Below are positions 8,177 through 63,863 of a stretch of DNA of 64,000 bases, in pieces; position 1 is the first letter of the stretch; the number at the start of each line of letters is the position of its first letter. Source of the stretch: Selaginella moellendorffii (Eukaryota; Plantae; Lycopodiophyta); assembly GCF_000143415.4 (NCBI RefSeq), contig NW_003314282.1:1383374-1447373 (forward strand), in the 5' to 3' direction. The position numbers were made by a program, and so were the translations under genes. Below the pieces are notes generated by a model. It did not search any database, was not told the DNA's origin, and was given only the letters and a program-made list of their open reading frames with translations.

Positions 8177-9625
8177 ATGGAGGATGTCCAAAGCCAAGCT
8201 CTAGCGATTCCTGCGAGAGAGAAGAAACGAGTGAGAGTGAATGCCGCGCCCTACGCAGCAGCGCTCCAGCGATTTGGCAACGAGAAATCTCTCCTGCAAG
8301 GAAAGAGGCTCCACGCCTTGATCGCCCAACGCCACCACGACCGAGACACTTACATCGGCAATCTCCTCGTCCAAATGTATGGCAAGTTCGGCAACATGGA
8401 AGACGCGGAGCTCGCATTCCACCGCATCGCCAAGCCCAACATCTTCTCCTTCAACCTCTTGATCGCCGCGTACCTCCAAAACGATTGCAGCGCCAGAGCT
8501 CTCGCCACTTTCGATCGGATGATCTCCTCCAGCAGCGTCGCCCCGGACGCTTACACTTTCTCCAACGCGGTCACCGCCTGCTCCAAGCTGGAAAATCTGT
8601 CCAGAGGTGAGGAACTCCACGAGAGAATCGCCTGCTCAAACCTGGAGAACACCACTGTCGTAGAGAATTCGCTGCTGGGTATGTACTCACGGTGCGGGAG
8701 CATCGATCGAGCTCGCCAACTTTTCGATCAGATGTGCTGCAAAGATCTCGTGTCCTGGAACACGATGCTCGCGGGATATGCCCAGAACGGGCATAGCAGC
8801 CAGGCTCTCGCGCTGTACAGCAAGATGTTAGAACAAGGCATCCAAGCTGACGATTTCACTTACTCGAGCGTTCTCAGCGCCTGCTCCAAGTGCGGTTCCT
8901 CGGATCTCCGCAGCCAAGCTGCCGGGCTGCTCGAAAAATCCATGGCCTCCGCCAGTGTCGTTGTGAAAAATGCGGCTGTCCAGTTGCTTGCCAGATGCGA
9001 GGGCCTCTCCAGCGCGAGGAAAAAGTTCGAGGCGATGGGGGCCGAGCGGAATGACGTCTCCTGGAACTCGATGATCGCTGCGTTTGCTGAGCACGGAGGT
9101 CTGGACCAGGCGATGGAGCTTTATCGCGAGATGGAGCTCGAAGGTGTCCAACCGAGTGAGGTGACCTTCATGAGCATCTTGCGAGCTTGCAGCCACTCTG
9201 GAGAGCTGGAGCAGGCCATCCGGAGCTTTGGCTGCATGCAGCACGACCATTGCCGGCTATTCCCTTTGCAGCAACAGTACCGCTGCGTTGTGGACGTTCT
9301 TGGACGAGCCGGATGGCTGGACCAGGCTGAGTATTTCATTTGCGGCACCGAGGAGCTCGAGCGGGATCCGGTTGCATGGCTGACACTTCTTGGAGCCTGC
9401 AGTGTCCATCGCGATGTAGATCGAGGAATTCAAGTCGCCAACAGGGTGGTGGAGCTGGATTCCAAGGGAGCTGCTGCTATTCCAGCTCTTGTGTTGCTGT
9501 CCAATATCTTTGCTGCTGCTGGAAGATGGGATGACGTTGCAAGCCTGAGAAGAGTCATTGATCAGAAAACTGAAAGACAAGAAAGAATCAAAAGAACTTG
9601 TTTACCTCGAGCCAAGTTCGCGTGA
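8177..9625 (+). CDS. PLS-class pentatricopeptide repeat protein with E-type C-terminus, no DYW domain
   Basis: Intronless 482 aa ORF with NLLVQMYGKFG, VSWNTMLAGYAQNG, CVVDVLGRAG, WLTLLGAC and VLLSNIFAAAGRWDD. Confidence 0.93.
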   Translation: MEDVQSQALAIPAREKKRVRVNAAPYAAALQRFGNEKSLLQGKRLHALIAQRHHDRDTYIGNLLVQMYGKFGNMEDAELAFHRIAKPNIFSFNLLIAAYLQNDCSARALATFDRMISSSSVAPDAYTFSNAVTACSKLENLSRGEELHERIACSNLENTTVVENSLLGMYSRCGSIDRARQLFDQMCCKDLVSWNTMLAGYAQNGHSSQALALYSKMLEQGIQADDFTYSSVLSACSKCGSSDLRSQAAGLLEKSMASASVVVKNAAVQLLARCEGLSSARKKFEAMGAERNDVSWNSMIAAFAEHGGLDQAMELYREMELEGVQPSEVTFMSILRACSHSGELEQAIRSFGCMQHDHCRLFPLQQQYRCVVDVLGRAGWLDQAEYFICGTEELERDPVAWLTLLGACSVHRDVDRGIQVANRVVELDSKGAAAIPALVLLSNIFAAAGRWDDVASLRRVIDQKTERQERIKRTCLPRAKFA

Positions 9626-9674: not shown

Positions 9675-11609
9675 TCAAGATGACGACTTCAAATTCCTCT
9701 CCCTGTAGAGGTGAGACAGCAGCACATACGTTGCACTGGCCTGCGGCGAGGCTTTCAAAAGCTTCTCACCAAAGATCTCGGCTCGACCAAAATCTCCATG
9801 CAGCTTACAGTTCGTGAGCAGCAGCTTCCAAGCCGTTCCATCGGCATCAAATGGCATACTCTCGAGCAGCTCCTGAGCCTGGGAAGTATGTCCCGCTCGG
9901 CCCAAAAGATCAGCTACACAGACGAAATGCTCCATGGTTGGAACCATACCGAAGTCACCTTGAAGTGAAAGGTACTGCTCGAGTCCATCCTTGTACAGCC
10001 CTGCGTGGCTACATAAGCAGAGAACGCATATGTAGAGTATGTCGTCGGGCTCCACGCCTTCCATAACCATCCTGTGGAAAACCATCAAGCCCGCCTTTCC
10101 CTGTCCATTGTAGCCATAAGCTGCGACCATCGCCGTCCAAGCCATCACCTCTTTGTCCTCGAGTTTCTCAAACAGCTCCAAAGCAACTCCCAGCAGTCCA
10201 CACTTCCCATACATGTTGATCAGCGCCGTCGCAACTTTAGTATTTGAATCCAAGCCGTGACTGATCGCTGTGGCGTGGAGACGCTTTCCTTGTTCCAGAA
10301 TCGTGGAGTTTGCGCACACGTCGAGAACCACGAGAAAGGATATACAGTCTGGCTTGACATCCATTCTCCAAAACAGCTCCAGCGCTTCTCTGTCCTGTCC
10401 CTTGTGTGCGTATGCGGAGATGATCACATTCCAAGAGATCACGTCCTTTTTCGGCATGCTGTCGAACAACTCCCGAGCTTCGAGCAGTTCTCCGTTGATA
10501 GCGTAGCCAAGCACCATAGCTGTTCTCGACACCATGTCATGCTCGGGCATCCTGTCGAAAAGTGCCTTTGAATCCTTGGTATAGCCGTGCTGGGCATACG
10601 CTTCGAGCATGGTGGTGCAGGTTACTAAGTCGAGACTGGGCATTCTCTGAAACAGCCCCTGTGCCTCGACAAGCTTCCCCCTCTTTGCATAAGCTCCGAT
10701 CATAGCAGCCCACGAGATTCCATTCCTCTCCGGTATTCCATCGAACAAACTCCTTGCTTCTCTGCAATGATCCTTCTCTTGTGTCATCCCTGTTGAGTTA
10801 TCTCGAAGTAGACTTCTTTCCGACCAGGAGAAAAGCCTGCTTTTCGAGAGTATATCACCACCTTCGAAAGGATTCTTGCTTTGCTGCGGCCCCCCGTCTT
10901 GAGCATACGCTGTGATCATTCCGTTCCAGGACTGGACATTCCACTGCGGCATCCTCTCGAAAACAGTCTTGGCTCTAACCAGGCTTCCGTTCTGCGCGCA
11001 CGCAGTAAACATTGCGTTCCAGCACGCAGCGTCCCTCGAAGGCATTCTGTCGAACATTCCTTTCGCCACCTGAGGCTGCCAGCTCTGGGCATATGCCGTA
11101 AACATGCTCGTCCACGAAATGAAGTCCCACTCGGGCATCTTCTCAAACATCCGGCTGGCTTCCTGGAGCAGCCCACCCTTCGCATACCACCCAAACAGCG
11201 AAGTCCAAGTCACTGCATTCTTTTGCGGAGCTCCCTCAAACGCAAGCCGTGCCTCTCGCAGAAACCCATTCGTGGCATAAGCCTTGATCAGCAGATTCCA
11301 CGAGAAAACGTTGGGCTCCTTGATGCCATCGAACACAGCCTTGGCGGCCTCCCAGTTTCCGCAGCTCCCGTACATATCCACCAGCAAGTTCCCGAGGAAA
11401 GTGTGCCCCTTGTAGCCGGATGTGTCGATATGGTCGTGGACCCGTTTACCTTGAAGGATCGACTTGGTCTGAGCGCATTGCCGCAGCAGAGAGGCGTAAG
11501 TGTCAATCGTAGCGGAGTCTCTGCCTAGAACAGCATCCAGATCCTGGAAAACATCACGGTAAGCAAGAGGAAGATTTCTTACTGCTCTAACAGCAAAAGG
11601 AGCATGCAT
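9675..11609 (-). CDS. PLS/SS-class pentatricopeptide repeat protein with E-type C-terminus, no DYW domain
   Basis: Intronless 644 aa ORF with a run of short ~31-aa motifs (FDRMP..D.VSW..M..AYA..G), CVADLLGRAG and ATYVLLSHLY. Confidence 0.93.
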   Translation of the reverse strand: MHAPFAVRAVRNLPLAYRDVFQDLDAVLGRDSATIDTYASLLRQCAQTKSILQGKRVHDHIDTSGYKGHTFLGNLLVDMYGSCGNWEAAKAVFDGIKEPNVFSWNLLIKAYATNGFLREARLAFEGAPQKNAVTWTSLFGWYAKGGLLQEASRMFEKMPEWDFISWTSMFTAYAQSWQPQVAKGMFDRMPSRDAACWNAMFTACAQNGSLVRAKTVFERMPQWNVQSWNGMITAYAQDGGPQQSKNPFEGGDILSKSRLFSWSERSLLRDNSTGMTQEKDHCREARSLFDGIPERNGISWAAMIGAYAKRGKLVEAQGLFQRMPSLDLVTCTTMLEAYAQHGYTKDSKALFDRMPEHDMVSRTAMVLGYAINGELLEARELFDSMPKKDVISWNVIISAYAHKGQDREALELFWRMDVKPDCISFLVVLDVCANSTILEQGKRLHATAISHGLDSNTKVATALINMYGKCGLLGVALELFEKLEDKEVMAWTAMVAAYGYNGQGKAGLMVFHRMVMEGVEPDDILYICVLCLCSHAGLYKDGLEQYLSLQGDFGMVPTMEHFVCVADLLGRAGHTSQAQELLESMPFDADGTAWKLLLTNCKLHGDFGRAEIFGEKLLKASPQASATYVLLSHLYRERNLKSSS

Positions 11610-17087: not shown

Positions 17088-17279
17088 AATTTCTAAGGTA
17101 TGCAGGGTTTGAATTCCTTTATGACAAATTAGAAGGCTTCATTGAACGCAGGTGTAGTGGTAATTCTCCTTTGATTGGAAGAAAGAATTCTGGGTTCATC
17201 CCCAACTTAATTTTTTTTGGTTTAGATATGTTTTATAGGGTTTCCAAAAGGTTTAAAATCATGCGAAAGCGTTTTGGCG

Positions 17280-18723
17280 ATGGACGGCCTTCCCGACGAG
17301 CTGCTCGTCCGAATCCTGTCCCTCCTCTTCTCCTCTCGCCACTTGTATTCGTGTTCTCTGGTGAGCAAGCGGTGGGCACATCTGGTAAGGCTCGTCACGC
17401 ATTTCAGCCTGGAATCCACAAGCGCCGCCGCCGAGGAGCAAGGCCTCGTCCGCTGGTTTGGCAGCAGCAATACTGGTACCAACCTCCGATCCTTGTCTTT
17501 CAGCGCTGCGCCATCACCCAAGCGCTGCTGTTCGCTTGGCTGGCTAGAGGGGATTGGCAAAAATCTCCACTCGCTTTCCATCGGCAGCTATACGCGGTTT
17601 GTGGATGGTTTCTGGAGCAGCATCGCGGCCTGCCAGAAGCTCCGCTGCCTTCACATCGACGCCATGCTCGATCCTTTGCCAGCGGAGGCGGCGCCGCCCA
17701 TCCTGCCCAATCTCCGCTTGTGCTTTCTTGAGGGAGGAGTGGATGTTTTCACCCTGCAGCAGCTCCTCGCGCACTGGAAATCTCTTGTTCATTTGAAGCT
17801 GAACAACGTCGTGGTGAAATCGCCCGGCACGTATCTGCTCGAGAGCCAGAGCCTCGACTCCCTCTTCCTGAGGACCAGGAAGTCCGTCCATGTCAACTTT
17901 TCTATCGCCTTGGACATGCCCAAGCTCCGCTGTATGTTCTGCAATGCGGTGCCGCGCGTGGAGCTCCTCCCGTCTACGTGCAATGTGGAGTGGATCAAGC
18001 TGCATGGGGACGTGCGGGACATCCAGGGCCTGCGCTTGTCCAAGCTCAAGATGCTCACCATCGGCAGCACCTTTGCTAGCTCTGCCCACCTCACGCAGAG
18101 GCTCGAGCCCATTGTCAGCAGGAAGTCCAGCCTCGGCGGAATCAGGGAGCTGCATCTGTTGCTGAGTCCGGCGGTCTTGCCCCACCCTCGCTCCGTCAAC
18201 CTCGCCGCACTCCTGGAGCCATTCCACGGCCTCGAGGTGCTCGAAGTCGCTCGCAGGGCGATCAAGGTATTTGGAGGATGATTACTGTGATAGTTCCCGA
18301 TCTGATATATATCCTATGCAGCTGCTGAGCCTGGAGGAGTGGAGTGACAGGCATGCACCGTTGCGCGTCCGCATTTTCTCGCCCTACTCAACCGAGGTGG
18401 ACGTGGAGAGCGCGTGGAACAGCGACGAGGTTGAGTTTGTGTGGGGGCTCATGGGAAGCAGCAGCTGTGTGACGCTGCTCGAGATACAGAGCTTGGCGGG
18501 TTGTCGGGTTCCAGAAGAGCGTCGGCCTCGGATTCCAGGAGCAATCCAGGAGGTGGCGGATGCGTTCCCGGGGCGTGTCAAGCTGCATCCATTTCGCTAT
18601 CAAGTCCCGCGGATGTGCGGCCAGCTGTGGCACCTGATCAAAGCTGGAGTCTACTCGGAAGCTCTGCACACTGAGAGCGACCACCCATGTAAATGTGTTG
18701 ACGTCGTGACCATGTGTGCATGA
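17280..18723 (+). CDS. F-box/LRR-like protein, 2 exons (intron ~18267-18321)
   Basis: MDGLPDELLVRILSLL...CSLVSKRW F-box motif followed by leucine-rich repeats; aag|gtattt...tatgcag|ctg intron. Confidence 0.82.
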
Positions 18724-22045: not shown

Positions 22046-24325
22046 ATGGATCCCGAATCTCAGCGGAGCTATGCGGAGCTCCCATCAGGGGAGGAGGCGG
22101 AGGAGATTCATTCAAATCCCACTGCGGCGACGGAGAATTCCAGGAACAGACGCATTGATCTAGTCCTGACGCTGGTGGGGATTTGCTGCGTCGTCGCTGG
22201 AACTTTTTTCTGGATCTCACTTCCTTCGAGCAACACCGAGAATTTCTCACGGATTGCTCCGGACGGGGGTTTCTTGGCCAGCGAGAGAACGGCATTCCAT
22301 TTCCAACCGCGGAACAACTGGATGAACGGTAAGCTTTTGCAAAAGATTTCCATGAAACCTCTCTGATTTATCATCTTTTGCTGGACAATTTTCCCTGATC
22401 TATCTTCCTCTGCTGGACATTCTTCCCTCACCAGATCCAAATGGTAAGATCTCAAGATCTTTCTCAAAAACTCTACTGACATCAATGAATTCTATGACTA
22501 TACCAGGTCCTCTCTTCTACAAAGGCTACTACCACTTGTTCTACCAGTACAATCCATATGGAGTAGAGTGGGGAAACATCTCCTGGGGCCATGCTGTGTC
22601 CACTGATCTCCTCCACTGGCAACATATGGATCTGGCAATGCAGCCAGACAAGTGGTATGATGCAGATGGAGTGTGGTCTGGCTCTGCAACAATCCTCCCC
22701 AATGGTCAAGTGATCATGCTCTACACTGGCTCCACAAATGCCTCTGTTCAGGTCCAAAATCTCGCTCTTCCACTCAACACCTCAGATCCACTCCTGAGGG
22801 AGTGGATCAAAATCCCAGAGAATCCCATTCTGGTGCCACCACCAGGGATTGCTCCTAAAGACTTCAGGGATCCAACAACAGCATGGCTGGAGGCTGATGG
22901 GCTGTGGAGAATTGCAATTGGTGCCAAAAAGGGCAGGGCTGGACTGGCTCTCATCTACAAAACCTTTGATTTCCTGCACTGGGAGCTGGAGGAGGAGTAT
23001 CTACACACTGTTCAAGGCACAGGGATGTGGGAGTGCATTGATTTCTATCCAGTCTCAACTGCCACCAGCAATGGGTTGGATACATCCAAAGTTCAGACCA
23101 ATGAGCTCACTAAGCACATTCTCAAGGCCAGCCTGGATGATGACAAGCATGACTACTATGCAATTGGGCTGTATTCTGAGAGCTCTCATACTTGGATCCC
23201 TGATGCCCTTGACAATGATGTTGGGCTGGGGCTGAGGTATGATTATGGCAAGTATTATGCCTCCAAGACTTTTTTTGATTCCAAGCACCAGAGGAGGATC
23301 TTGTGGGGATGGGCTAATGAATCGGACAGTCTGCAAGATGATATCAGGAAGGGGTGGTCTTCGGTGCAGGTAAAATGTCATTTTATTGTTTTTTTTTCCA
23401 CTTGGGCTCACATACTTGTCTTTGCATGAAAAGACACTGCCCAGGATCTTGTATCTTGACAACTTGACTGGTACCAACTTGATCCAATGGCCAATTGAGG
23501 AGGTAGATGCCCTCAGGCATGACAAAGTGAGCAGATCAAATGTGCTTCTCAAAGGTGGTGACGTGGTAGAAGTTGATGCAGCTCAAGGGGCACAGGTATA
23601 GATGCCTTTTTTCTTCACTTCTCTCTCACCACCTTTTTTGTTCACTTGTGCAGCTTGACATTGAGGTGGGATTTGAGTATCCAGATGCAAGCAAGCTGGA
23701 CGCACTTCCAGAGAGCGAGAATTACGATTGCAGCCAAGGTGGGGCAACTCACAGAGGTGTTTATGGCCCTTTTGGCCTCCTTGTTCTTGCTGAAGACAAG
23801 TTGCAAGAGATGACAGCAGTCTACTTCTACATGACACTAAAACGAGATGGAAGTTGGGAAACAAGAGTTTGCAGCGACCAAAGCAGGCAAGCTTCTTCTT
23901 GCTAAAGTTTTCGATCCACGTCTCTGATCCCCATGTTTCCAGATCATCTCTAGAACCCGGAATTGACACAACCGTGTACGGAACGCTCTTCCACAGGCTC
24001 CCAACGGAGGATTCGCTCTCGTTGCGTGTCATAGTAAGCATTGGATCGTGCGCGGAGCTTGCTCTAATCCTTTCTTGGGTGTTGCGCGATGCAACTTGTG
24101 TAGGTGGATCACTCCATCGTGGAGACTTTCGTGCAAGGGGGACGCGCTTGTATCACGTCTCGCGTCTATCCAACGCTTGCTACTGGTGACAAGGCTCGCC
24201 TCTTCATGTTTAACAATGGAACGCAACCGGTTGTCGTGAAGAACTTGGATGCGTGGAAGATGAGATCGACCACGCTGAGTGTCTTGCCCGTCACTGAATG
24301 GAGGCTCGCTGCTCGACAAAGTTGA
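22046..24325 (+). CDS. Acid beta-fructofuranosidase (vacuolar-type invertase, GH32), multi-exon with a 9-nt micro-exon at 22435-22443
   Basis: N-terminal transmembrane anchor; [11 protein letters not shown]|DPN|GP; FRDP; WECIDF; YASKTFFD; SRVYP. Confidence 0.95.
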
Positions 24326-30500: not shown

Positions 30501-32151
30501 TTTGTCTCGAGTAAATGTTTTATGAGATGCGATAGTACAGGTTCGCGCTGCTGGGCCCAACGTTGCCGGAGTAATACTTCAACAGGAGCTCCCTCATTTG
30601 TCTCATCTCGGTGTGCGAGCTCGTCAGGTATGCTGCAGAATATGGTCCAGACAGAGTCCTTACTCGGTGGTTCTGCAGGAGAAAGTTGTGTTTGTGACGT
30701 GTGATGACGACGATAAAATCAAGGAAATGCGGTCGTTGCTTGGTAAAAGTATCAAGTATGTTTATTGTTGTCACTTCTGCTACGTTCTAACGTCAGCTTT
30801 GCAGGCTGGAGTCTTCTTCTGTAGGTGTTCGTGTGTCGACTCAAGGAGCGGAGCAGGGAGCAAGCTCCACGGCCAGAGAAACAGAAAAGGGTGCCCATGA
30901 TGAAGCCTCTGTTTCTGAAAGCAAGGTATAGTCTTCCGTTCTGTGTTACCACTGCTTGTTTCCCTGTCAATGGTGTAGTTGTACATGTTTTGTTGAGAGC
31001 GCTATGTGCCATGGTTGACAGTCTTGGATCAGAAGATTATGCTACAACCTGCTGATGTTGGGAAGGGAAAACATACGTTTGTAGGTGGTCAAAAGCTCGT
31101 CAGGAGTTATCCTTGATCTCAAGGATGCAGATTTGGCGACAGCAGGTGCAAAATCGAGCGCTTGCGGGAAACTAGCTACGCTGGCCGAGCTCTCTGCTGA
31201 AGGTAAGTATTTCAATTTTTGTGTGCAAGTTTTTAGTTTTTTGCCTTTGCAGAACAAAACAATGGCGTTTCATGCAAGTTTTTGGTACCACCGGGGCTAG
31301 TAATTCCTTTCGGATCAATGGAGGGGGCATTAGAAAGCAGTGGGAGTATGGATACGTTTCACGACCTGCTAGAGCAAACGGAAACAGCTCAGGTTGAGGA
31401 GGGTGAGCTCGATGGGATTTGCAACCAGCTACGCGAACTGGTATCGTCACAGAGATTGCCAAAGTCTGCGATGAGCAAAATTGCGGAAGGCTTCTCATCC
31501 GACGCACGACTTATCGTCAGGTCCAGCGCCAACGTAGAAGATCTAGCCGGCATGTCAGGGGCCGGGCTTTACGACTCCATCCCCAACGTGAAGCTATCAG
31601 AGCCCGAAAACTTTTGCAAGGCAGTAGCAGGGGTGTGGGCTTCTCTATACACAAGAAGAGCGGTTCTTAGCAGGCGGGTTGCAAAGGTACCACAGAAGGC
31701 AGCATCAATGGCGGTTCTAGTGCAGGAACTTCTGGCTCCGGATCTAAGTTTTGTCCTGCATACGGTGGATCCGATCGATCGAAACGCTCAGATAGTCCAG
31801 GGGGAACTAGCGGCGGGCTTGGGAGAGACTCTGGCCTCTGGAACCAGAGGAACGCCGTGGAGGCTGTCGGCGAACAAGGTGGATGGCAGTGTCAAGCTGG
31901 TGGCATTTGCAAACTTTAGCGAGGAGTTCGTGGCGGGGAGAGATGGAGTCGCGGATGGCAAGGTTTCGAAGAGAGTGGTGGATTACAGCACCAAGAAGCT
32001 GTCGGTGGACTTGGAGTACTCGGTGACGCTGGGACAGCGGCTTGCTGCTATAGGGACGTTTTTGGAGAAGAGTTTTGGATGCCCGCAAGATATAGAAGGG
32101 TGTGCGGTAGGGGAGGAGATTTACATTGTCCAAGCCAGACCGCAGCCATAA
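27532..32151 (+). CDS. PWD: Phosphoglucan, water dikinase (GWD3), multi-exon
   Basis: Transit peptide, N-terminal CBM20 (HQVEFGEH...GSW), [15 protein letters not shown], phosphohistidine [33 protein letters not shown]-terminal IVQARPQP*. Confidence 0.95.
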
Positions 32152-49539: not shown

Positions 49540-50519
49540 ATGGCCGACATCGAGAAGATCCCGCTCCACGCGTCGTCGCAGTCCGACATCGACGAGATCG
49601 AGAATCTCTTCCAGATAAGTGTCCAGCCCGCGGCGCCGGTAGATTCCAGCTCCAGGAGGCCGCCGAGCCCGCCGCGCGCCACAATTCCAGTCACGCCAGT
49701 GGCATCGGCAGCGAAATCCAAAGGAGCTCCTCCTCCTCCTCCTCCTCCGCCGCCTCCTCCGTCATATCCAGCGGCCAATCTCAATGCCTCCTCTTCCTCC
49801 GAGACCTCTCCAGCGATGATGACGGGATTTGGGGGCGGCCCCGGCTATGACACTCTCACGGAGCCAGTGTGGGAGACGCTCAAGCGCGATATCAACCAGG
49901 TGTTTGAGAACCTCAAGAATGTGGTGTTTCCAAATCCATACCGCAAGGACGCTGGCAAGGCGCTGAAGGATTGGGATCTCTGGGGGCCATTCTTCTTCAT
50001 CATTTTCCTCGCAACCGTTCTCTCCTACTCGGCCTCCGCGGATCGGGTAAGATTTTCGCTGCTTCTTTCCTCTCGATCCAAAGGCTTGGTGCTCATGATC
50101 TTTTCTCTCGTGTTCCAGGCCAAAGTTTTCGCGACCGTCTTCGCGGTTCTCTCCGCCGGAGCGGTGGTTCTCACAGTGAACGTAGTCTTGCTGGTAAGTT
50201 CTCTCCATTGTTTTCGAGCTCCAGTGACCGAGTGATGGATCCCGCGATGGATTTGCAGGGTGGCAGCATCATCTTCTTCCAGAGCTTGAGCGTGCTGGGC
50301 TACTGCCTCTTCCCGCTGGCTGTTGGAGCGGCGATTTGCATGGTCCGAGACAACAAGCTGTTTAGAAGCGTGGTGGTGCTCGTCACGGTGGCGTGGAGCT
50401 CCTGGGCGGTGTATCCTTTCATGAGCTCCGCTGTGCCGGGTAGCCGGAAGGCGCTGGCCATCTATCCGGTGTTCCTCTTGTACGTGTCCTTGGGCTTTTT
50501 GGTCTTGGCCAATAACTGA
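49540..50519 (+). CDS. Yip1-domain protein (YIP4/YIPF6-like), 3 exons
   Basis: DIDEIENL; [13 protein letters not shown]; [10 protein letters not shown]; [15 protein letters not shown]; [13 protein letters not shown]. Confidence 0.92.
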
Positions 50520-51652
50520 TGCGATAGAGAAAATTTTCCCACGCGTTCTAGGGCTACCACCTTTTATATTCTTTACTTTTAACCTTTTACCGGTTATCTT
50601 GAATGCTTCGTAATCCCGGTTTCTTGGAAACACACATTTTTTGAGCAAAAGATTGTGTGTAAACGAAAACACAGAGAAAAAGGAGAGAGATTACAGGCAT
50701 CCTCCCTAAATGCTCTACTAAAACACTAGAAAATTGGCGTGCACAAATGTATTCCTAGGAATATTTTCACCCTTTATTCTATGGTGATTTATCACAAAGT
50801 GGAACTTAAATTTTTCATATACCACATGTTACATGCCACATGCAATATATTATGTGTCTAAGGTGGAACTCAAACCACTAAACAAGGATAAGCACACAAA
50901 CAAGAGTTAGACTATGCCTTAAGTTAGTCAACCACACGGCAAGTTTAAGCATTCTTCCAGCCTGAAATGAAGCATGTATAGCTCTTTGTGTTCTTGTTGC
51001 CAAAACTCCACCTGGTGGCGCATGGCACGAATTCAGCTGATAGATTACAACGGGAAAGGCTAGAAGAAACAGTCTTATTTGAGTTTCTTGATTTCTTTCT
51101 TTTTCTTATCTAACTGTTTATGCGAGCAATCGATGAAGCTTGCCTTGTCTTGTTGCTTGGTAAAATTCTGATGAGATTTAACAAGATTTTAGCGGGATTG
51201 TAGATTCCAAGCGATGCGAAGTACTTAAAATTGCTTTTGGGGTTGCAAGGTTTTTCTTCGAGCACTCCATAGTACTGCAGTCACGTTTTGGCACCCGGAG
51301 AAGAACCAGCCGAGGAAAACAACAAAATTATCATCTGTAGATGAATCCCGTAACTTGTTAAATGCAAAGGATGGCTCAGCCTTAAATCGGTGGAATTCAA
51401 GAGCCTGTAGACAGCTTATTGTGTACTCCGAAAATTCACGGACAGCGAACAGTGTGGAAGTAAGAAAATCGAAGTACCTGATACAGGAATGGGGGGACAA
51501 TCGAATGTGCTAGCTGTGACGATCTCTAGCCCATTGCTGGTGCGAGTCTATTCAAATAGCATGTTCTAGTTGTAAACAAGTTCTTGCATTAGAAAATACT
51601 TTAAAAAACAAGAGATCGTGTAAACACTGTATGACGCAGTCTTCAAATTACC

Positions 51653-51663
51653 CCTATATAAAC
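51653..51663 (+). promoter_or_regulatory. TATA box of KP4-like copy 1 (the same motif lies at ~53620 for copy 2)
   Basis: ctatataaacc about 80 bp upstream of the ATG, conserved in both units. Confidence 0.6.
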
Positions 51664-51736
51664 CAGACCATTCCATTGGCAAAATCATTCTTCATACTTC
51701 AGCTCCTCATTACAGCATTCTTTCTAACATAGTCGA

Positions 51737-52141
51737 ATGGAGTCTTCTCTCAAGCTCTTTTCTCTTCTTGCTATTCTTCTTGTGATCTTTCTTGGCTCCT
51801 CCAGCTGCGCCAAGAACGACAACTGCAATGGCTCTGGATTCTGTGGATCTCGCGTCAACCAGGCCGATTGCCGGCGAGCAATCTCTCGCTACACCGACGG
51901 AACAATCTACAATGGCTTCACTTCTCGTGTTTCTGGCCAATGCACCGCAATTTTCAGGTGCGATGGCAACTATCCATCCGTGAGTGGGGCAGTTCTCAAG
52001 CAGCAGTTTCTCCATGTGTATGACAACCAGCCTTGCCGACTCTGCGGAAGCCATGCATTCGACGGGGGCAATTGCGAGGCCACACTGAATTATTGTGCGA
52101 ATTGCAGGGACTCTGGAAATCCCAACGCTGTGGAGAACTGA
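51737..52141 (+). CDS. Secreted KP4 killer-toxin-like protein, copy 1 (134 aa)
   Basis: Signal peptide; NCNGSGFC, PCRLCGS and ATLNYC match the KP4 pattern NCRGSS.C...GCRVCGS...LTVNYV; 10 Cys after the signal peptide; intronless. Confidence 0.8.
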   Translation: MESSLKLFSLLAILLVIFLGSSSCAKNDNCNGSGFCGSRVNQADCRRAISRYTDGTIYNGFTSRVSGQCTAIFRCDGNYPSVSGAVLKQQFLHVYDNQPCRLCGSHAFDGGNCEATLNYCANCRDSGNPNAVEN

Positions 52142-53702
52142 AGCTAGGCTTTGGACATGTTTCAAATAAAAGGATTGACAATAATTTGCTGTGCAAGTGT
52201 TTGCAGTGTTGTTAGTGTTTGCTTTTTATTCGCTGTAACCCCCCAAATGCTGAATGACAACTTCAAGCTCCACAATGAGCTTTGAACTTGATTGATAAAC
52301 TTCTTTTGATTTGAAGCAGTGAGTATACTTTCTGTTTTGTGAGCGGAGACCGTCGCTGCACAGCCATTAAAGCGATGATCTTCACTGGGAGTCAAGTAAA
52401 ACAGAAGTCAAAGTTTAATTGACTCGCTAGAACTTGAAAAAAGTGTTGTATGCATGGACTTGGAGCCACCTACGCCCGATCATTCCAGATAACGCTTGCA
52501 TCCTCTGTATTACCGCGGCTGCTGGCACAGAGTGTCGATTGCGATATTTGATATGCACTGCATGGCTGTGAGAATTTGGTTGCTTGAATTGTCCAACTAG
52601 TTCCGGTGAGAAACGTAATGCAGCGTCTCACCATATTATAATTTAACTGCTGCAATTTGCCCAGCTTTTTGGCAAGACCACCTTGACTTGGTAGTCAGTC
52701 TTCACTAACTGAAACTTGTTACGTGTTGTACTTGGAAACTACCAGCATTACAAGTTTGACATGCTCCATACAGGCGCACCAATGAAGCTGAATCCATATT
52801 TGTTATAACATTTTTTTAGCAAAAAATTGTGCGCAAACGAAAACACAGAGAGAAAGGAGAGAGATTTGACGATTGGTTAGTCTCGGCCAAACACACTGTC
52901 GAGCGTTACCGGTATCCTCCCTAAACGCTCTACTAAACACTCACAAACGTATTCCTAGGAACACACACGACAAGTTCGAGCGTTCTTCCAGCCTGAAATG
53001 AAGCACGTATAGCTCTTTGTGTCCTTGTCACCAAAACTCCACCTGGTGGCGCATGGCACGAATTCAGCTGATAGATTACAACGGGAAAGGCTAGAAGAAA
53101 CAATCTTATTTGAGTTTCTTGATTTCTTTCTTTTTCTTATCGGACTGTTTATGCGAGCGATCGATGAAGCTTGCCTTGTCTTGTTGCTTGGTAAAATTCT
53201 GATGAGATTTAACAAGATTTAAGCGGGATTGTAGATTCCAAGCGATGGGAAGTACTTAAAATTGCTTTTGGGGTTGCAAGGTTTTTCTTCGAGCACTCCA
53301 TACTGCGGTCACGTTTGGCACCCGGGGAAGAACCGGGGAAGAACTTGTTAAATGCAAAGGATGGCTCAGCCTTAAATCGGTGGAATTCAAGAGCCTGTAG
53401 ACAGCTTATTGTGTACTCCGAATTCACGGACAGCGAACACTGTGGAAGTAAGAAAATCGAAGTACCTGATACAGGAATGGGGGGACAATCGAATGTGCCA
53501 TGCTGGTGCGAGTCTATTCAAATAGCATGTTCTAATTGTAAACAAATTCTTGCATTAGAAAATACTTTAAAAATTAGGAGATCGTGTAAACTCTGTATGA
53601 CGCAGTCTTCAAATTACCCCTATATAAACCAGACCATTCCATTGGCAAAATCATTCTTCATACTTCAGCTCCTCATTACAGCATTCTTTCTAACATAGTC
53701 GA

Positions 53703-54107
53703 ATGGAGTCTTCTCTCAAGCTCTTTTCTCTTCTTGCTATTCTTCTTGTGATCTTTCTTGGCTCCTCCAGCTGCGCCAAGAACGACAACTGCAATGGCTC
53801 TGGATTCTGTGGATCTCGCGTCAACCAGGCCGATTGCCGGCGAGCAATCTCTCGCTACACCGACGGAACAATCTACAATGGCTTCACTTCTCGTGTTTCT
53901 GGCCATTGCACCGCAATTTTCAGGTGCGATGGCAACTATCCATCCGTGAGTGGGGCAGTTCTCAAGCAGCAGTTTCTCCATGTGTACGACAACCAGCCTT
54001 GTCGACTCTGCGGAAGCCATGCATTCGATGGGGGCAATTGCGAGGCCACACTGAATTATTGTGCGAATTGCAGGGACTCTGGAAATCCCAACGCTGTGGA
54101 GAACTGA
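53703..54107 (+). CDS. Secreted KP4 killer-toxin-like protein, copy 2 (134 aa)
   Basis: Identical to copy 1 except one Q>H change (VSGQCT/VSGHCT). Confidence 0.8.
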   Translation: MESSLKLFSLLAILLVIFLGSSSCAKNDNCNGSGFCGSRVNQADCRRAISRYTDGTIYNGFTSRVSGHCTAIFRCDGNYPSVSGAVLKQQFLHVYDNQPCRLCGSHAFDGGNCEATLNYCANCRDSGNPNAVEN

Positions 54108-54677
54108 AGCTAGGCTTTGGACATCTTCCAAATAAAAGGATTGACAATAATTTGCTGTGCAAGTGTTTGCAGCATTGGTAGTTTTCGTTTTCATTTTCAG
54201 TTTATTCGCTGTAACCACCCCAAATGTTGAATGACAACTTCAAGGTCCACAATGAACTTTGAACTTGAATGTTAAACCTCCTTTTGATTTAAAGCAGTGA
54301 GTATACTTTCTGTTCTATGTGAGCAGAGACCCTAGAAGCTTTTTTTTGTGGAAAGTTCGTTCGCTGCAGAGCCATTAAAGCGATGATCTTCACTGGGAGA
54401 GAGAAAAGGTAATAGAGTGTCAAAGTTTATTTGACTTGCTAGAACTGGAAAAACGTGTTGATTATACATGGACTTTAAATAATATTGCGATATTCGATAT
54501 GCACTGTATGGCTGTGAGAATTTTGTTGCTTGAAAAATCCAACTAGTTCCGGTGACAAACGTAATGCAGCGTCTCACCATATTACTGCAATTTGTCCAGC
54601 TTTTGGCAAGACCACCTTGACTTTGTAGTCAGTCTTCACTATCTGAAACTTGTTACGTGTTGTATTTGGACACTACC

Positions 54678-54731
54678 AGCATTACAAGACCAGCATTACA
54701 AGTTTAGCATTACAAGTTCAGCATTACAAGC
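54678..54731. repeat. Four tandem copies of (c)agcattacaag near the end of duplication unit 2
   Basis: Directly visible; only one copy at the equivalent position of unit 1 (~52743). Confidence 0.85.
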
Positions 54732-54869
54732 ACCAATCAAGCTGAATCCAAGGGTAGTGGATTTAAAGTATTATTGATTTATACTTATGTTAAAGGTCGT
54801 TGAGCACCCTCAAGTAAATTAAAAAGAATATTTTTAAATTTAGTTTTTCACTATACATTTCATGAATCG

Positions 54870-55090
54870 GCGACTTGCACGCCCAGATCAATCGGAGCAG
54901 CTCGAGCTGGAGCACATCTCTCGCAATTCTCATCATCCAAATGTATGCGCGGCTCGGGAGCTTATGCGAGGTAGCAGCTGCGTTCCAGCAGATCGAGAAC
55001 CCCAACATTTACTCAACATCACGCTTGCAGCACTTACCCAAACCGGGCATTATGACAAGGCACTGCTGTTCTACGCTGTTTTAAAAAATG
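54870..55090 (+). pseudogene. PPR gene fragment
   Basis: LHAQI...TSLAILIIQMYARLGSLCEVAAAFQQIENPNIY, then a frameshift into LAALTQTGHYDKALLFY. Confidence 0.7.
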
Positions 55091-62415: not shown

Positions 62416-63863
62416 TTACTTCTTTCTACTCTTCTTCACGAAGAAATTGATCCCCTCGCAAACGTTTCCCAGCACATGATCCGAGACAGCCCACGGCGAG
62501 AGAATCATCTGCGAGAACTCATCCGGCGACGCCTCGTGCATCGTCCACTCCACATTCTTGGCCTGCTCGAACGTGGGAAACGCTCCATAGTTTCTCTGCT
62601 CGGCGACGCCGGATCGCTGGCCGGGAGTTACTCCACACCCCGGCGGACTGCTGCTTAGAACCAGCAGCCTCCCTGGCGGATACAGAACCACGGGCCCCTT
62701 CTTCTCGATGGAGCTCTCCCCCTCGCACTTTCCCTCCTCGCAAGAACTTCCCTGTTTTTGCTCGCTTGGTCCACCTCCGCTCAGCTCGCTGCACACCCTG
62801 CTCCCGAAATCGTCCACGTTGTCCTGGGCTCTCTGGAACATCTGCATTGCGTCCACCGCCCTGGAGATCTTCTCCCAGTCCTCGTCGTGCTTGGCGATCT
62901 CGTCGGCCCTCTTCCAGTCGAAGTTGCACACTCGCTTGCGGAGGTCCTCAATGGAAGCCACGGAGAATCGGGGGACGACGTCGTGCAAGCAGACGAAGGA
63001 GGTGGCGAAGCTGGCGCACTCCTTGGCCAGCTCCAAGCTGACGCTGGCCGGCACCGAGAAGCCCCAGCACTCGAGGTTGCGGTGCTCGTCTCGCAACTTC
63101 AGTCCACACATGATCCCCACTGCTGCTCCCATGCTGTGCCCGACTATAACCAGCTTCTCCAGGCAGCTGTCCTCCTGTAAAACTTGCCGGATGTGCGGCC
63201 TCACTTCTTCCAGGAGTGCGTCTGTCGCACGAGCAAATCCGCCGTGTGCATGCCCGGACTCGAACGGAGCTGGCATGGCTCCTGCACTGACAAGGATGTC
63301 AATCACATGAGAAGTCCCACGTACCGAGAGAACCAGTGCTCCATACGAGTGATCCACTGAGAGAGCAAACGCAGGCCGCATGGACTCCTGCTCGGGATTC
63401 CACACGGCTGTGACTATGGAAGACTCGGGCAGATGCGAGAAGAGCGAGAACGAGGCCGGGTCTGCGACGTAGACGGCTTCAGCCATTGCTCTCCAGTGTT
63501 GTGCTCTTACCATGAACTCGGGGTCGCTCGCTAAGTCACTTGGATGACCAGGAATTTCCATGGGATCGTTTTCGGTGATCTACAAGTTGTCACAAACCAT
63601 AAGCTTCCTTCCAAGAATGTAAACAATACGAAAGAAAGAGAGCTTACCTTTGCCATGGCCGCAAGACCAAGTACAACATCCGCGGCCGACCAAGGTCCGA
63701 TGTGATCCTGCACGCACAAAACACCTTTTGCAATGACTGTCATGGGTGACGATTCAGCCCCAGCTGCGTTCTTTGCAACCTGCTCCTTGAGCTTCCAAAC
63801 TCCCACTCTTCCGGCAAAGTAAGCTCCACAGATCCCACATCCCACAAGAATCAGCTTCCACAT
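62416..63863 (-). CDS. Class-3 lipase (DAG-lipase-like), 2 exons
   Basis: LVLSVRGT, GHAHGGF, VIVGHSMGA (GxSxG), DVVPRFS, LYPPGR, SDH. Confidence 0.9.

Follow-up and report, generated by a model that had tools for sequence, protein, structure and literature searches.

KP4, the killer toxin of Ustilago maydis virus P4, inhibits fungal growth by blocking the uptake of Ca2+, an activity that depends on Lys42. MU117 stands for 'meiotically up-regulated gene 117', a name that reflects meiotic up-regulation in S. pombe (Mug117), and to our knowledge no member of this family has a demonstrated biochemical function or a functional assay. The corresponding Pfam family, PF15474, has been placed within the KP4 structural superfamily, with cluster kcl38-A in KP4 group 3 (PMC12382754). 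In the same paper, plant proteins with the KP4 fold are given only as moss KP4 and DUF26/Gnk2. The moss examples are PpKP4 of Physcomitrium patens, which are KP4 genes acquired from a fungus according to the passages of PMC12382754 and PMC12513842 that cite Guan et al. 2023. No mention of MU117 in plants was found in the literature searched, a body of text to which supplements and subscription papers (e.g. Richards et al. 2009) did not belong.

Here, a tandem pair of MU117 genes, A and B, is described from a 64-kb window of Selaginella moellendorffii nuclear DNA, the window being the whole stretch of DNA that was analysed. The explanation that we favour, with moderate confidence and for all of its parts jointly, is that the two are functional tandem paralogues in the nuclear genome, each driven by a TATA box and encoding a KP4-fold protein of probable fungal origin that would be secreted and act on fungi.

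Gene structure and expression

The preliminary description had claimed two intact, intronless genes for proteins of 134 amino acids, preceded by TATA boxes and arranged in tandem. All of this holds. The open reading frames and the TATATAA boxes lie at the positions in Table 1, RNA reads run continuously through both genes without joints, and pairwise alignment shows a direct duplication of 1.97 kb, beyond the period limit of 500 in Tandem Repeats Finder, with units of ~1.8 kb each. Excluding gaps, the two units are 96.6% identical upstream, 99.0% identical in the coding sequence and 88% identical downstream, and only one base differs in the 120 nt 5' of the ATG. The coding sequences differ at 4 of 405 nucleotides. 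Three of these changes are synonymous and the other results in Q68H; synonymous changes likewise make up 7 of the 11 variants in reads. This excess of synonymous differences between paralogues and alleles suggests that the genes are under purifying selection. No third copy was found in the window by tblastn. The Selaginella protein is 99% identical to SELMODRAFT_413786, from which the product of gene B differs solely by F35L.

Table 1. Features of the tandem MU117 locus, in positions of the 64-kb window.
Feature	Position	Strand	Basis
CDS A, MU117 / KP4-fold protein, 134 aa, Gln68	51737..52141	+	ORF, Pfam PF15474, structure model
CDS B, 134 aa, His68	53703..54107	+	ORF, Pfam PF15474 at 70.6 bits
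Duplication unit A (promoter, gene A, 3' flank)	~50925..52765	+	pairwise alignment with unit B
Duplication unit B	~52955..54700	+	pairwise alignment with unit A
TATA box, gene A (TATATAA)	51655..51661	+	pattern search
TATA box, gene B (TATATAA)	53621..53627	+	pattern search
AATAAA 3' of CDS A	52165	+	pattern search
Transcript, gene A, ~560 nt, unspliced	51702..52261	+	stranded raw RNA reads X21, X22
Transcript, gene B, unspliced	53661..54245	+	RNA depth and Logan contig
Predicted signal peptide A, aa 1-25	51737..51811	+	sequence and low-confidence model helix
Mature domain A, aa 26-134, ten Cys	51812..52138	+	KP4 structural match 26-123; Pfam MU117 match aa 29-123

Both genes are abundantly transcribed and intronless. 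Stranded raw reads from two runs (X21 and X22) cover them in the sense orientation only at depths of ~1000-1400, with maxima of ~1430 for gene A and ~1300 for gene B, and contigs from two older studies were found as well. Neither antisense reads nor splice joints were found over either gene in these stranded data, in which a minus-strand rRNA fragment, the internal strand control, gives reads of the opposite orientation. The gene A transcript has its boundaries at 51702-51707, where read ends pile up, and at 52258-52261. For gene B, 53661 is the first position of a Logan contig and 54245 the position at which molecules begin; the copy B contig reaches the equivalent of ~51695 in the numbering of copy A. 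Two long open reading frames on the minus strand, at 51710-52165 and at 53676-54218, were discarded as shadow ORFs, there being no such transcript in the stranded reads and the Pfam domain lying in the sense frame.

The fungal affinity of the sequence is the sole pointer towards fungal contamination or an assembly artefact as the explanation of the locus. Against it, the same contiguous window carries PPR-E, GH32, PPDK_N, F-box, Yip1 (49.5-50.5 kb) and lipase genes, which bears out the linkage to flanking plant genes on which the first reading of the locus had relied. The genes also appear in RNA and contig data from at least three studies, and three other plants have homologues on chromosomes 46-178 Mb long. 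On these grounds contamination is ruled out, the chance of it being negligible.

Precursor and cysteine framework

The N-terminal leader opens with a short polar segment, which is followed by a hydrophobic core of 13 residues and by small residues at positions -3 and -1. Its hydrophobic stretch covers aa 7-20, and residues 7-19 appear in the structure model as a separate helix of low confidence (pLDDT 55-59). Homologues also carry leaders, the sequence of which varies freely among them. From these features, a signal peptide cleaved after Ser-Cys-Ala may be inferred. Besides Cys24 in the leader, ten cysteines were counted at positions 30, 36, 45, 69, 75, 100, 103, 113, 120 and 123 of the mature part, with the spacing C-X5-C ... 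C-X2-C, and the motifs NCNGSGFC, CRLCGS and TLNYC occur at aa 29-36, 100-105 and 116-120, respectively, in agreement with the initial claims on both counts. Ten homologues lack both Cys45 and Cys69 and one lacks a single one of them; this co-loss of 10:1 supports a disulfide between the two. Cys30 and Cys100 are lost jointly in 3 homologues and singly in 5; motif analogy suggests the pairs Cys30-Cys100 and Cys36-Cys103. Two or three of the five predicted pairs can be inferred in this way. Each gene gives rise to an unspliced mRNA of ~560 nt from its TATA promoter and encodes a precursor of 134 residues. The predicted signal peptide would direct the precursor into the secretory pathway, leaving a mature domain of ~109 residues for which a compact alpha/beta sandwich, stabilised by five disulfides, is predicted.

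Family membership and predicted fold

Copies A and B match MU117 (PF15474) at 70.0 and 70.6 bits against a gathering cut-off of 30.4, with aa 29-123 aligned to profile positions 2-105 of 105. The preliminary description, which proposed an HMM search against the Kp4 family, needs correction on this point, since neither copy matches PF09044 (cut-off 27.8 bits) at E<=1. With a Pfam match to MU117, none to Kp4 and the fold described below, MU117 is placed as a sister family of Kp4 inside the KP4 structural superfamily. The two families are bridged by a Fusarium protein (P0067) that clears both Pfam cut-offs colinearly (30.2 bits for Kp4), and 8 of 34 MU117 family members match Kp4 at E<=1. Sequence searches against the PDB gave no significant result: the protein itself did not find KP4 and returned a chance match to VP4 (E 0.56), the family profile met 1kpt colinearly at a non-significant E of 7.2, and P0067 returned nothing useful. 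What connects these proteins to KP4 is therefore their fold and the Pfam bridge rather than any direct resemblance in sequence.

The AlphaFold model (pLDDT 85) has the predicted fold of the KP4 toxin and is superposable on it over the whole domain, as the earlier reading had anticipated. In Foldseek, the top match is KP4 (1kpt; E 2.4e-4, probability 1.00, TM by target 0.63). VIA-align against 48,161 chains also ranks 1kpt first (Z 9.6, rmsd 2.7 A over 94 residues, whole chain), with a match that spans model residues 26-123 at 21% identity. The chains that follow in VIA-align are Zt-KP4 (Z 7.3), Y3 (Z 6.6) and DUF26 ectodomains (Z 6.5 and 5.9), with weaker matches to Gnk2 with mannose (Z 5.9) and the LDL lectin (Z 5.6). 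Neighbours in the ESM Atlas are MU117, Kp4, Hce2 and Gnk2 clusters, rows 8-10 being Gnk2/CRK. This common fold and the Gnk2/CRK rows could be taken to mean that the Selaginella proteins are lectin-like antifungals whose mode of action, like that of Gnk2/DUF26, the LDL lectin or Y3, is to bind glycans of the fungal wall and not to block a Ca2+ channel. We regard this as unlikely, however, as KP4 is the best match by more than 2 Z units over the next, a PF01657 match and the C-X8-C-X2-C motif are both absent from either protein, and homology at the sequence level leads to Kp4 rather than to lectins.

Distribution and origin

Selaginella, Diphasiastrum, Ceratopteris and Adiantum are the only plants named as holders of the family by an exhaustive phmmer search and by searches based on words. 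All other named matches are fungi, except for one nematode fragment and one giant bacterial protein, and six close matches are metagenome contigs, among them contigs of ERZ15610129, ERZ27227284, ERZ1034379, ERZ1034429 and ERZ1034373. Among the named matches of four large searches, a result that depends on database content, there is no member from seed plants, bryophytes or algae, consistent with the claim that this is not a normal seed-plant family. Within the fungi, the family ranges over Taphrinomycotina, Pezizomycotina, lichen formers and Mucoromycota. The nearest relatives of the Selaginella genes are in Mortierellomycotina and Umbelopsis (~50-56% identity). The closest fungal members, from Mortierellomycotina, are 120-128 aa long, show the same arrangement of ten cysteines and lack introns; the genes are intronless in the plants as well as in Mortierella. 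Mortierellomycotina are soil and root-associated fungi. Identity to lycophyte and fern relatives is up to 79%, the value reached with Ceratopteris, which has a tandem cluster on chromosome 21.

In phylogenetic trees, the plants and Mortierellomycotina/Umbelopsis form one clade, with support of 99/96 in one tree and 92/91 in a larger one. This clade sits inside an otherwise Ascomycota family, such that the plants are nested among fungal sequences with support. Resolution within the clade is weak, and neither the number of transfers nor even the direction is fixed by it: Diphasiastrum falls on the plant side in one tree and on the fungal side in the larger one, and the AU test does not reject a grouping of Selaginella with Diphasiastrum (p 0.23).

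Early vascular plants probably acquired the family, which is otherwise fungal, by transfer from a fungus, and the distribution of the family points to an old event that is not private to Selaginella. Since the family is common to another lycophyte and to ferns, with up to 79% identity, the acquisition appears old, and inheritance may have been vertical thereafter. Two earlier proposals survive in part. That of a fungus-derived gene is supported by the fungal family and its grouping with Mucoromycota, but not as an event of the Selaginella lineage; that of recent amplification applies to the local duplication, which is fairly recent, and not to the acquisition. The source may have been a Mucoromycota-like fungus that passed the gene to an early vascular plant, or to lycophytes and ferns separately. 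Purifying selection would have kept it in both groups afterwards, with local duplication in several of them, and from seed plants it would be absent or lost.

Could the family have reached its present distribution with no fungus-to-plant transfer, either as an ancient eukaryotic vertical family with many losses or by passage from an early vascular plant to Mucoromycota? The larger tree would allow it, with Diphasiastrum as sister to the Mucoromycota clade (95/82) and the plants paraphyletic when rooted on Ascomycota. The plant genes are, moreover, old and well integrated: the fern and lycophyte copies lie on chromosome-scale contigs, the genes are expressed, and the GC content of their coding sequences is 0.51-0.57 vs 0.38-0.47 in the surrounding DNA. 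We nevertheless consider such an origin unlikely. The family is broad in fungi, whereas the named plants are lycophytes and ferns only; under vertical descent, algae, bryophytes, seed plants and almost all remaining eukaryotes would have had to lose it; the AU test does not reject monophyly of the plants (p-AU 0.39); and all of the genes are intronless.

Transfer from a fungus allows a bolder reading, which is possible but tentative. More than 400 million years ago, the common ancestor of vascular plants may have received a single MU117/KP4-fold gene from a fungus of the Mucoromycota type. This gene would have stayed nearly unchanged in lycophytes and ferns and been lost in seed plants, its abundant product serving in the apoplast to restrain or manage fungal partners via Ca2+-dependent tip growth. 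The oldest symbioses between plants and fungi belong to the Mucoromycota lineage. Three fungus-to-lycophyte transfers were reportedly described in Plant Cell in 2009 by Richards et al. The Ceratopteris genome paper covers bacterial transfers only, and a 2025 review of horizontal gene transfer makes no mention of KP4 or Selaginella.

Possible functions

By analogy with KP4-superfamily proteins, the Selaginella products may be apoplastic, constitutively made proteins that act on the fungal surface. Most likely, they would interfere with Ca2+ uptake and with tip growth, as a preformed defence or to control fungal partners; it is this analogy that suggests an antifungal or Ca2+-related role. High constitutive expression fits a developmental role as much as a defensive one. 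The same protein might instead act on the plant's own cells: without being antifungal, it would be secreted to regulate their development or their Ca2+-dependent tip growth. In the parts of PMC12382754 that bear on this, moss KP4 alters the Ca2+ gradients of moss cells (citing Guan et al. 2023) and UmV-KP4 disturbs those of root hairs. Expression of the Selaginella genes is high with no known pathogen challenge, and conservation of 79% between Selaginella and Ceratopteris is unusual for a defence protein in an arms race. On the other hand, tandem amplification in several species (Selaginella; Ceratopteris chromosome 21) is typical of defence families, and the moss genes belong to a different Pfam family (PF09044), and a role confined to the plant's own cells seems unlikely.

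Comparison with known systems

Among plant proteins, the DUF26/Gnk2 group (ginkbilobin-2, CRKs and PDLPs; PF01657) resembles the Selaginella proteins in its related alpha/beta fold (Z 5.9-6.5) and comprises secreted, Cys-rich proteins, of which antifungal activity is a feature. It differs in being a vertically inherited plant family with another Cys motif, no Pfam match and a clearly weaker structural match, and is a structural cousin only. Zt-KP4-1 of Zymoseptoria tritici (8acx) is the second-best structural match (Z 7.3); the identity to it and to other KP4-superfamily fungal effectors is just 9-15%, and those proteins are pathogen effectors.

So far, fungal KP4-type genes in plants have been documented for mosses (Pfam Kp4). 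As far as the papers citing PpKP4 relate, the moss case resembles what is proposed for Selaginella, with a gene for a fungus-derived, secreted KP4-superfamily protein that has been domesticated and is expressed in a seed-free plant. In the same accounts, however, the moss proteins belong to Pfam Kp4 and cluster with Fusarium KP4L, whereas those of Selaginella are of the MU117 type and group with Mucoromycota, and no moss protein was named in any homologue search. The different Pfam type, the different fungal clustering and the lack of a moss match suggest a separate transfer, on the basis of trees that took in no moss KP4 sequence. If this is true, the killer-toxin fold was recruited by plants a second time, independently of the moss event.

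The fungal MU117 proteins (S. pombe Mug117) are matched over their full length far above the cut-off and include ten-Cys, intronless members in Mortierellomycotina. The family has been described as fungal, whereas the present members come from the genomes of lycophytes and ferns. The Selaginella genes are highly expressed and apparently under purifying selection, and tandem amplification has occurred in a lycophyte as well as in a fern. They provide a testable case of how seed-free vascular plants obtained proteins for defence or signalling from fungi, why seed plants seem to be without MU117 and what MU117 proteins do.

KP4 itself (1kpt) heads the structural matches, with an alignment that extends over the entire toxin of 105 residues. 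It is a secreted protein, as is predicted for the Selaginella products, and like them has ten cysteines in a mature part of ~105 aa. The motif N-C-x-G-S-x-x-C, the later C-x-x-C-G-S and L-N-Y near the C-terminus are features that we take to be common to the toxin and the Selaginella proteins. Unlike the Selaginella genes, which are cellular, nuclear and of a plant, KP4 is carried on a dsRNA virus; the middle six cysteines occupy different positions, and the Selaginella proteins have no significant sequence match to PF09044 or 1kpt. The locus represents a second fungal branch of the KP4-fold superfamily, MU117, in vascular plants.

Family and fold of the proteins

Both proteins belong to the MU117 family (Pfam PF15474): they score about 70 bits over its full domain, where the cut-off is 30.4. 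The preliminary description presented them as KP4-like, citing the motifs NCNGSGFC, CRLCGS and TLNYC and ten cysteines in the mature part, all of which are correct on the sequence. The name stands for the fold and for distant homology but not for strict family membership, as the proposed HMM comparison with Pfam Kp4 (PF09044) gave no match at E<=1 for either protein. Direct sequence comparison with KP4 gave no significant similarity. An AlphaFold2 model built from a 34-sequence alignment (mean pLDDT 85, above 90 through the domain) has the structure of the Ustilago maydis virus toxin KP4, 1kpt, as its top Foldseek match in the PDB (E 2.4e-4, probability 1.00) and its only one below 1e-3, bearing out the structural likeness. 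VIA-align, independent of Foldseek and run on 48,161 representative chains, likewise placed 1kpt first (Z 9.6, rmsd 2.7 Å over 94 residues, the whole toxin), followed by Zt-KP4 (Z 7.3), Y3 (6.6), DUF26/Gnk2 (5.9-6.5) and LDL lectin (5.6) before a drop to Z <3.

Judged by sequence, MU117 and Kp4 are joined through intermediate proteins. Kp4 is touched at E<=1 by 8 of 34 family members, and a Fusarium decemcellulare protein (P0067), found from the Selaginella protein by phmmer with E 6.7e-4 in 1.84 billion sequences, is colinear and scores above the curated cut-offs of both families. Neighbours in the ESM Atlas fall in the same families (MU117, Kp4, Hce2 and Gnk2), one cluster being 84% Kp4 and 16% MU117. 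A PF15474 cluster has already been placed within the fungal KP4 structural superfamily (De Guillen et al. 2025, PMC12382754).

Among 102 homologues, loss of Cys45 and Cys69 is joint in 10 cases and single in one, which argues for a bridge between them. By analogy with KP4, bridges Cys30-Cys100 and Cys36-Cys103 are likely, their counterparts being KP4 bridges 5-78 and 11-81; co-loss of Cys30 and Cys100 is weak (3 together versus 5 single).

Duplication and host DNA

Each of the two 134-aa ORFs occupies one unit of a ~1.8-kb direct duplication, and tblastn of the whole window found no further copy. Pairwise identity of the units, gaps excluded, is 96.6% upstream, 99.0% in the coding sequence and 88% downstream, pointing to a fairly recent though not brand new duplication. 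Coding changes are mainly silent: three of the four nucleotide differences are synonymous and the fourth gives Q68H. Each copy has a TATATAA about 80 nt before the ATG and an AATAAA 3' of the stop codon. At the distal end of unit B, a 14-bp repeat (ACCAGCATTACAAG) occurs in 4.3 tandem copies; its motif region is present as a single copy in unit A.

The window is plant nuclear DNA. A fungal contaminant was rejected, given that plant genes share the same 64 kb and that the protein matches SELMODRAFT_413786 of Selaginella moellendorffii at 99% identity, copy B differing from that entry only by F35L.

Features of the window
Feature	Position	Strand	Remark
PPR gene	8177-9625	+	adjacent to next; one of the two has an E motif
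PPR gene	9675-11609	-
F-box gene	17274-18281
GH32 invertase-type gene	22485-23429
PPDK_N gene	31282-32151
Yip1 gene	49540-50519		end ~1.2 kb upstream of duplication
Duplication unit A	roughly 50925-52765
TATATAA, copy A	51655	+
Transcript A	~51702 to 52258-52261	+	RNA read boundaries
Antisense ORF	51710-52165	-	151 aa; rejected
Gene A	51737-52141	+
SSU rRNA fragment	52471-52533	-	63 nt
Duplication unit B	roughly 52955-54700
TATATAA, copy B	53621	+
Transcript B	~53661 to 54245	+	RNA boundaries
Antisense ORF	53676-54218	-	180 aa; rejected
Gene B	53703-54107	+
14-bp tandem repeat	54675-54735
Class-3 lipase (lipase_3)	62416-63561

Expression

Transcription over 50900-55000 was examined with two raw stranded RNA-seq runs plus Logan contigs from two older studies. 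About 12% of each raw run gave a depth of ~400-1400 on both genes (6258 and 2677 reads placed, out of 9.2 million), with zero flank coverage, no joints and a single read orientation. The 3' flank of copy A contains an insertion not shared by copy B, and this holds a fragment of small-subunit rRNA (Rfam SSU_rRNA_bacteria positions 500-530, E 5e-5; the universal 515-530 region), on which rRNA reads accumulate before continuing into unlike sequence. Since reads on this minus-strand fragment run the opposite way, the mRNAs of the KP4-like genes come from the plus strand, and the antisense ORFs that fully span both genes are therefore shadows, with no antisense transcript in the stranded RNA. Seven of 11 variant letters in the reads are synonymous and the F35L allele is among them, so further alleles or paralogues are also expressed.

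Distribution and origin

Homologues were sought by word-indexed searches with the protein, a mixed family profile and a plant-only profile, and by exhaustive phmmer of 1.84 billion representatives. The named plant holders are only Selaginella, Diphasiastrum complanatum, Ceratopteris richardii and two Adiantum species; no seed plant or bryophyte is among the named matches. On chromosome 21 Ceratopteris has three or more loci, of which two (L006 and L007; CM035426.1, 32.58 and 32.90 Mb) are identical copies separated by 320 kb; L007 is followed ~1 kb downstream by a degenerate second fragment (11427-11579, 49% identity). Counted with KP509_21G015900 and KP509_21G016100, these represent an independent local amplification in the fern. 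Six close matches lie on short, low-coverage ENA metagenome contigs (L001-L004, L009, L010). Their MU117 proteins are of plant type (53-74% identity) and fall beside the fern and Selaginella sequences in the trees; the contigs are probably of fern or lycophyte origin, from environmental or skim data.

Nearly all remaining named matches are fungal. About 40 Mortierellomycotina proteins, together with Umbelopsis, come closest (48-58% identity); Pezizomycetes, lichen-forming Lecanoromycetes, Schizosaccharomyces Mug117 and Pneumocystis are more distant. The matches outside fungi and plants comprise a partial nematode protein and some giant proteins, one of them bacterial. The former (P0077, Mesorhabditis belari, 100 aa, on a 5.96 Mb contig) is an MU117 protein inside the Mortierellomycotina/Umbelopsis clade and reflects either fungal contamination or another transfer. 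In the giants, P0059 (3384 aa, from a bacterium of candidate division WWE3) and P0023 (3388 aa), 8-9 separate stretches match the Selaginella protein (E 1.8e-4 and 7e-9, whole library); either these are Cys-rich modules that share its fold and recur in a CPR bacterium, or the similarity is compositional.

Plants and Mucoromycota come together in maximum-likelihood trees (LG+C20+F+G4), with support of 99/96 (45 rows) and 92/91 (56 rows). Plants form a single clade in the 45-row tree (94/83); in the 56-row tree Diphasiastrum shifts next to fungi (95/82). Neither the monophyly of plants (AU test, p 0.39) nor that of lycophytes (p 0.23) is rejected, and the genes of Selaginella, Diphasiastrum, Ceratopteris and Mortierella are intronless. 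The simplest reading is that early vascular plants received the gene from a Mucoromycota-like fungus; it would then have been inherited vertically, duplicated locally in tandem and lost in seed plants. Multiple transfers, or a reverse direction for the Mucoromycota branch, may have occurred instead.

Possible function and known systems

By analogy, the protein could act on Ca2+-dependent tip growth as a preformed, secreted antifungal or as a means of managing fungi, a reading to which we give somewhat less than an even chance. UmV-KP4 and Zt-KP4-1, which have the same fold, are toxins or effectors that inhibit fungal growth. One main rival is a developmental role directed at the plant itself; in plant cells, UmV-KP4 and moss KP4 perturb Ca2+ gradients (PMC12382754). 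The other is a lectin-type mechanism, the more distant structural relatives of the Selaginella protein being sugar-binding antifungals. No description of MU117 in plants, of these host lineages or of this donor affinity was found in the searchable literature; as a kind, the plant-domesticated fungal KP4-superfamily gene is already known from mosses.
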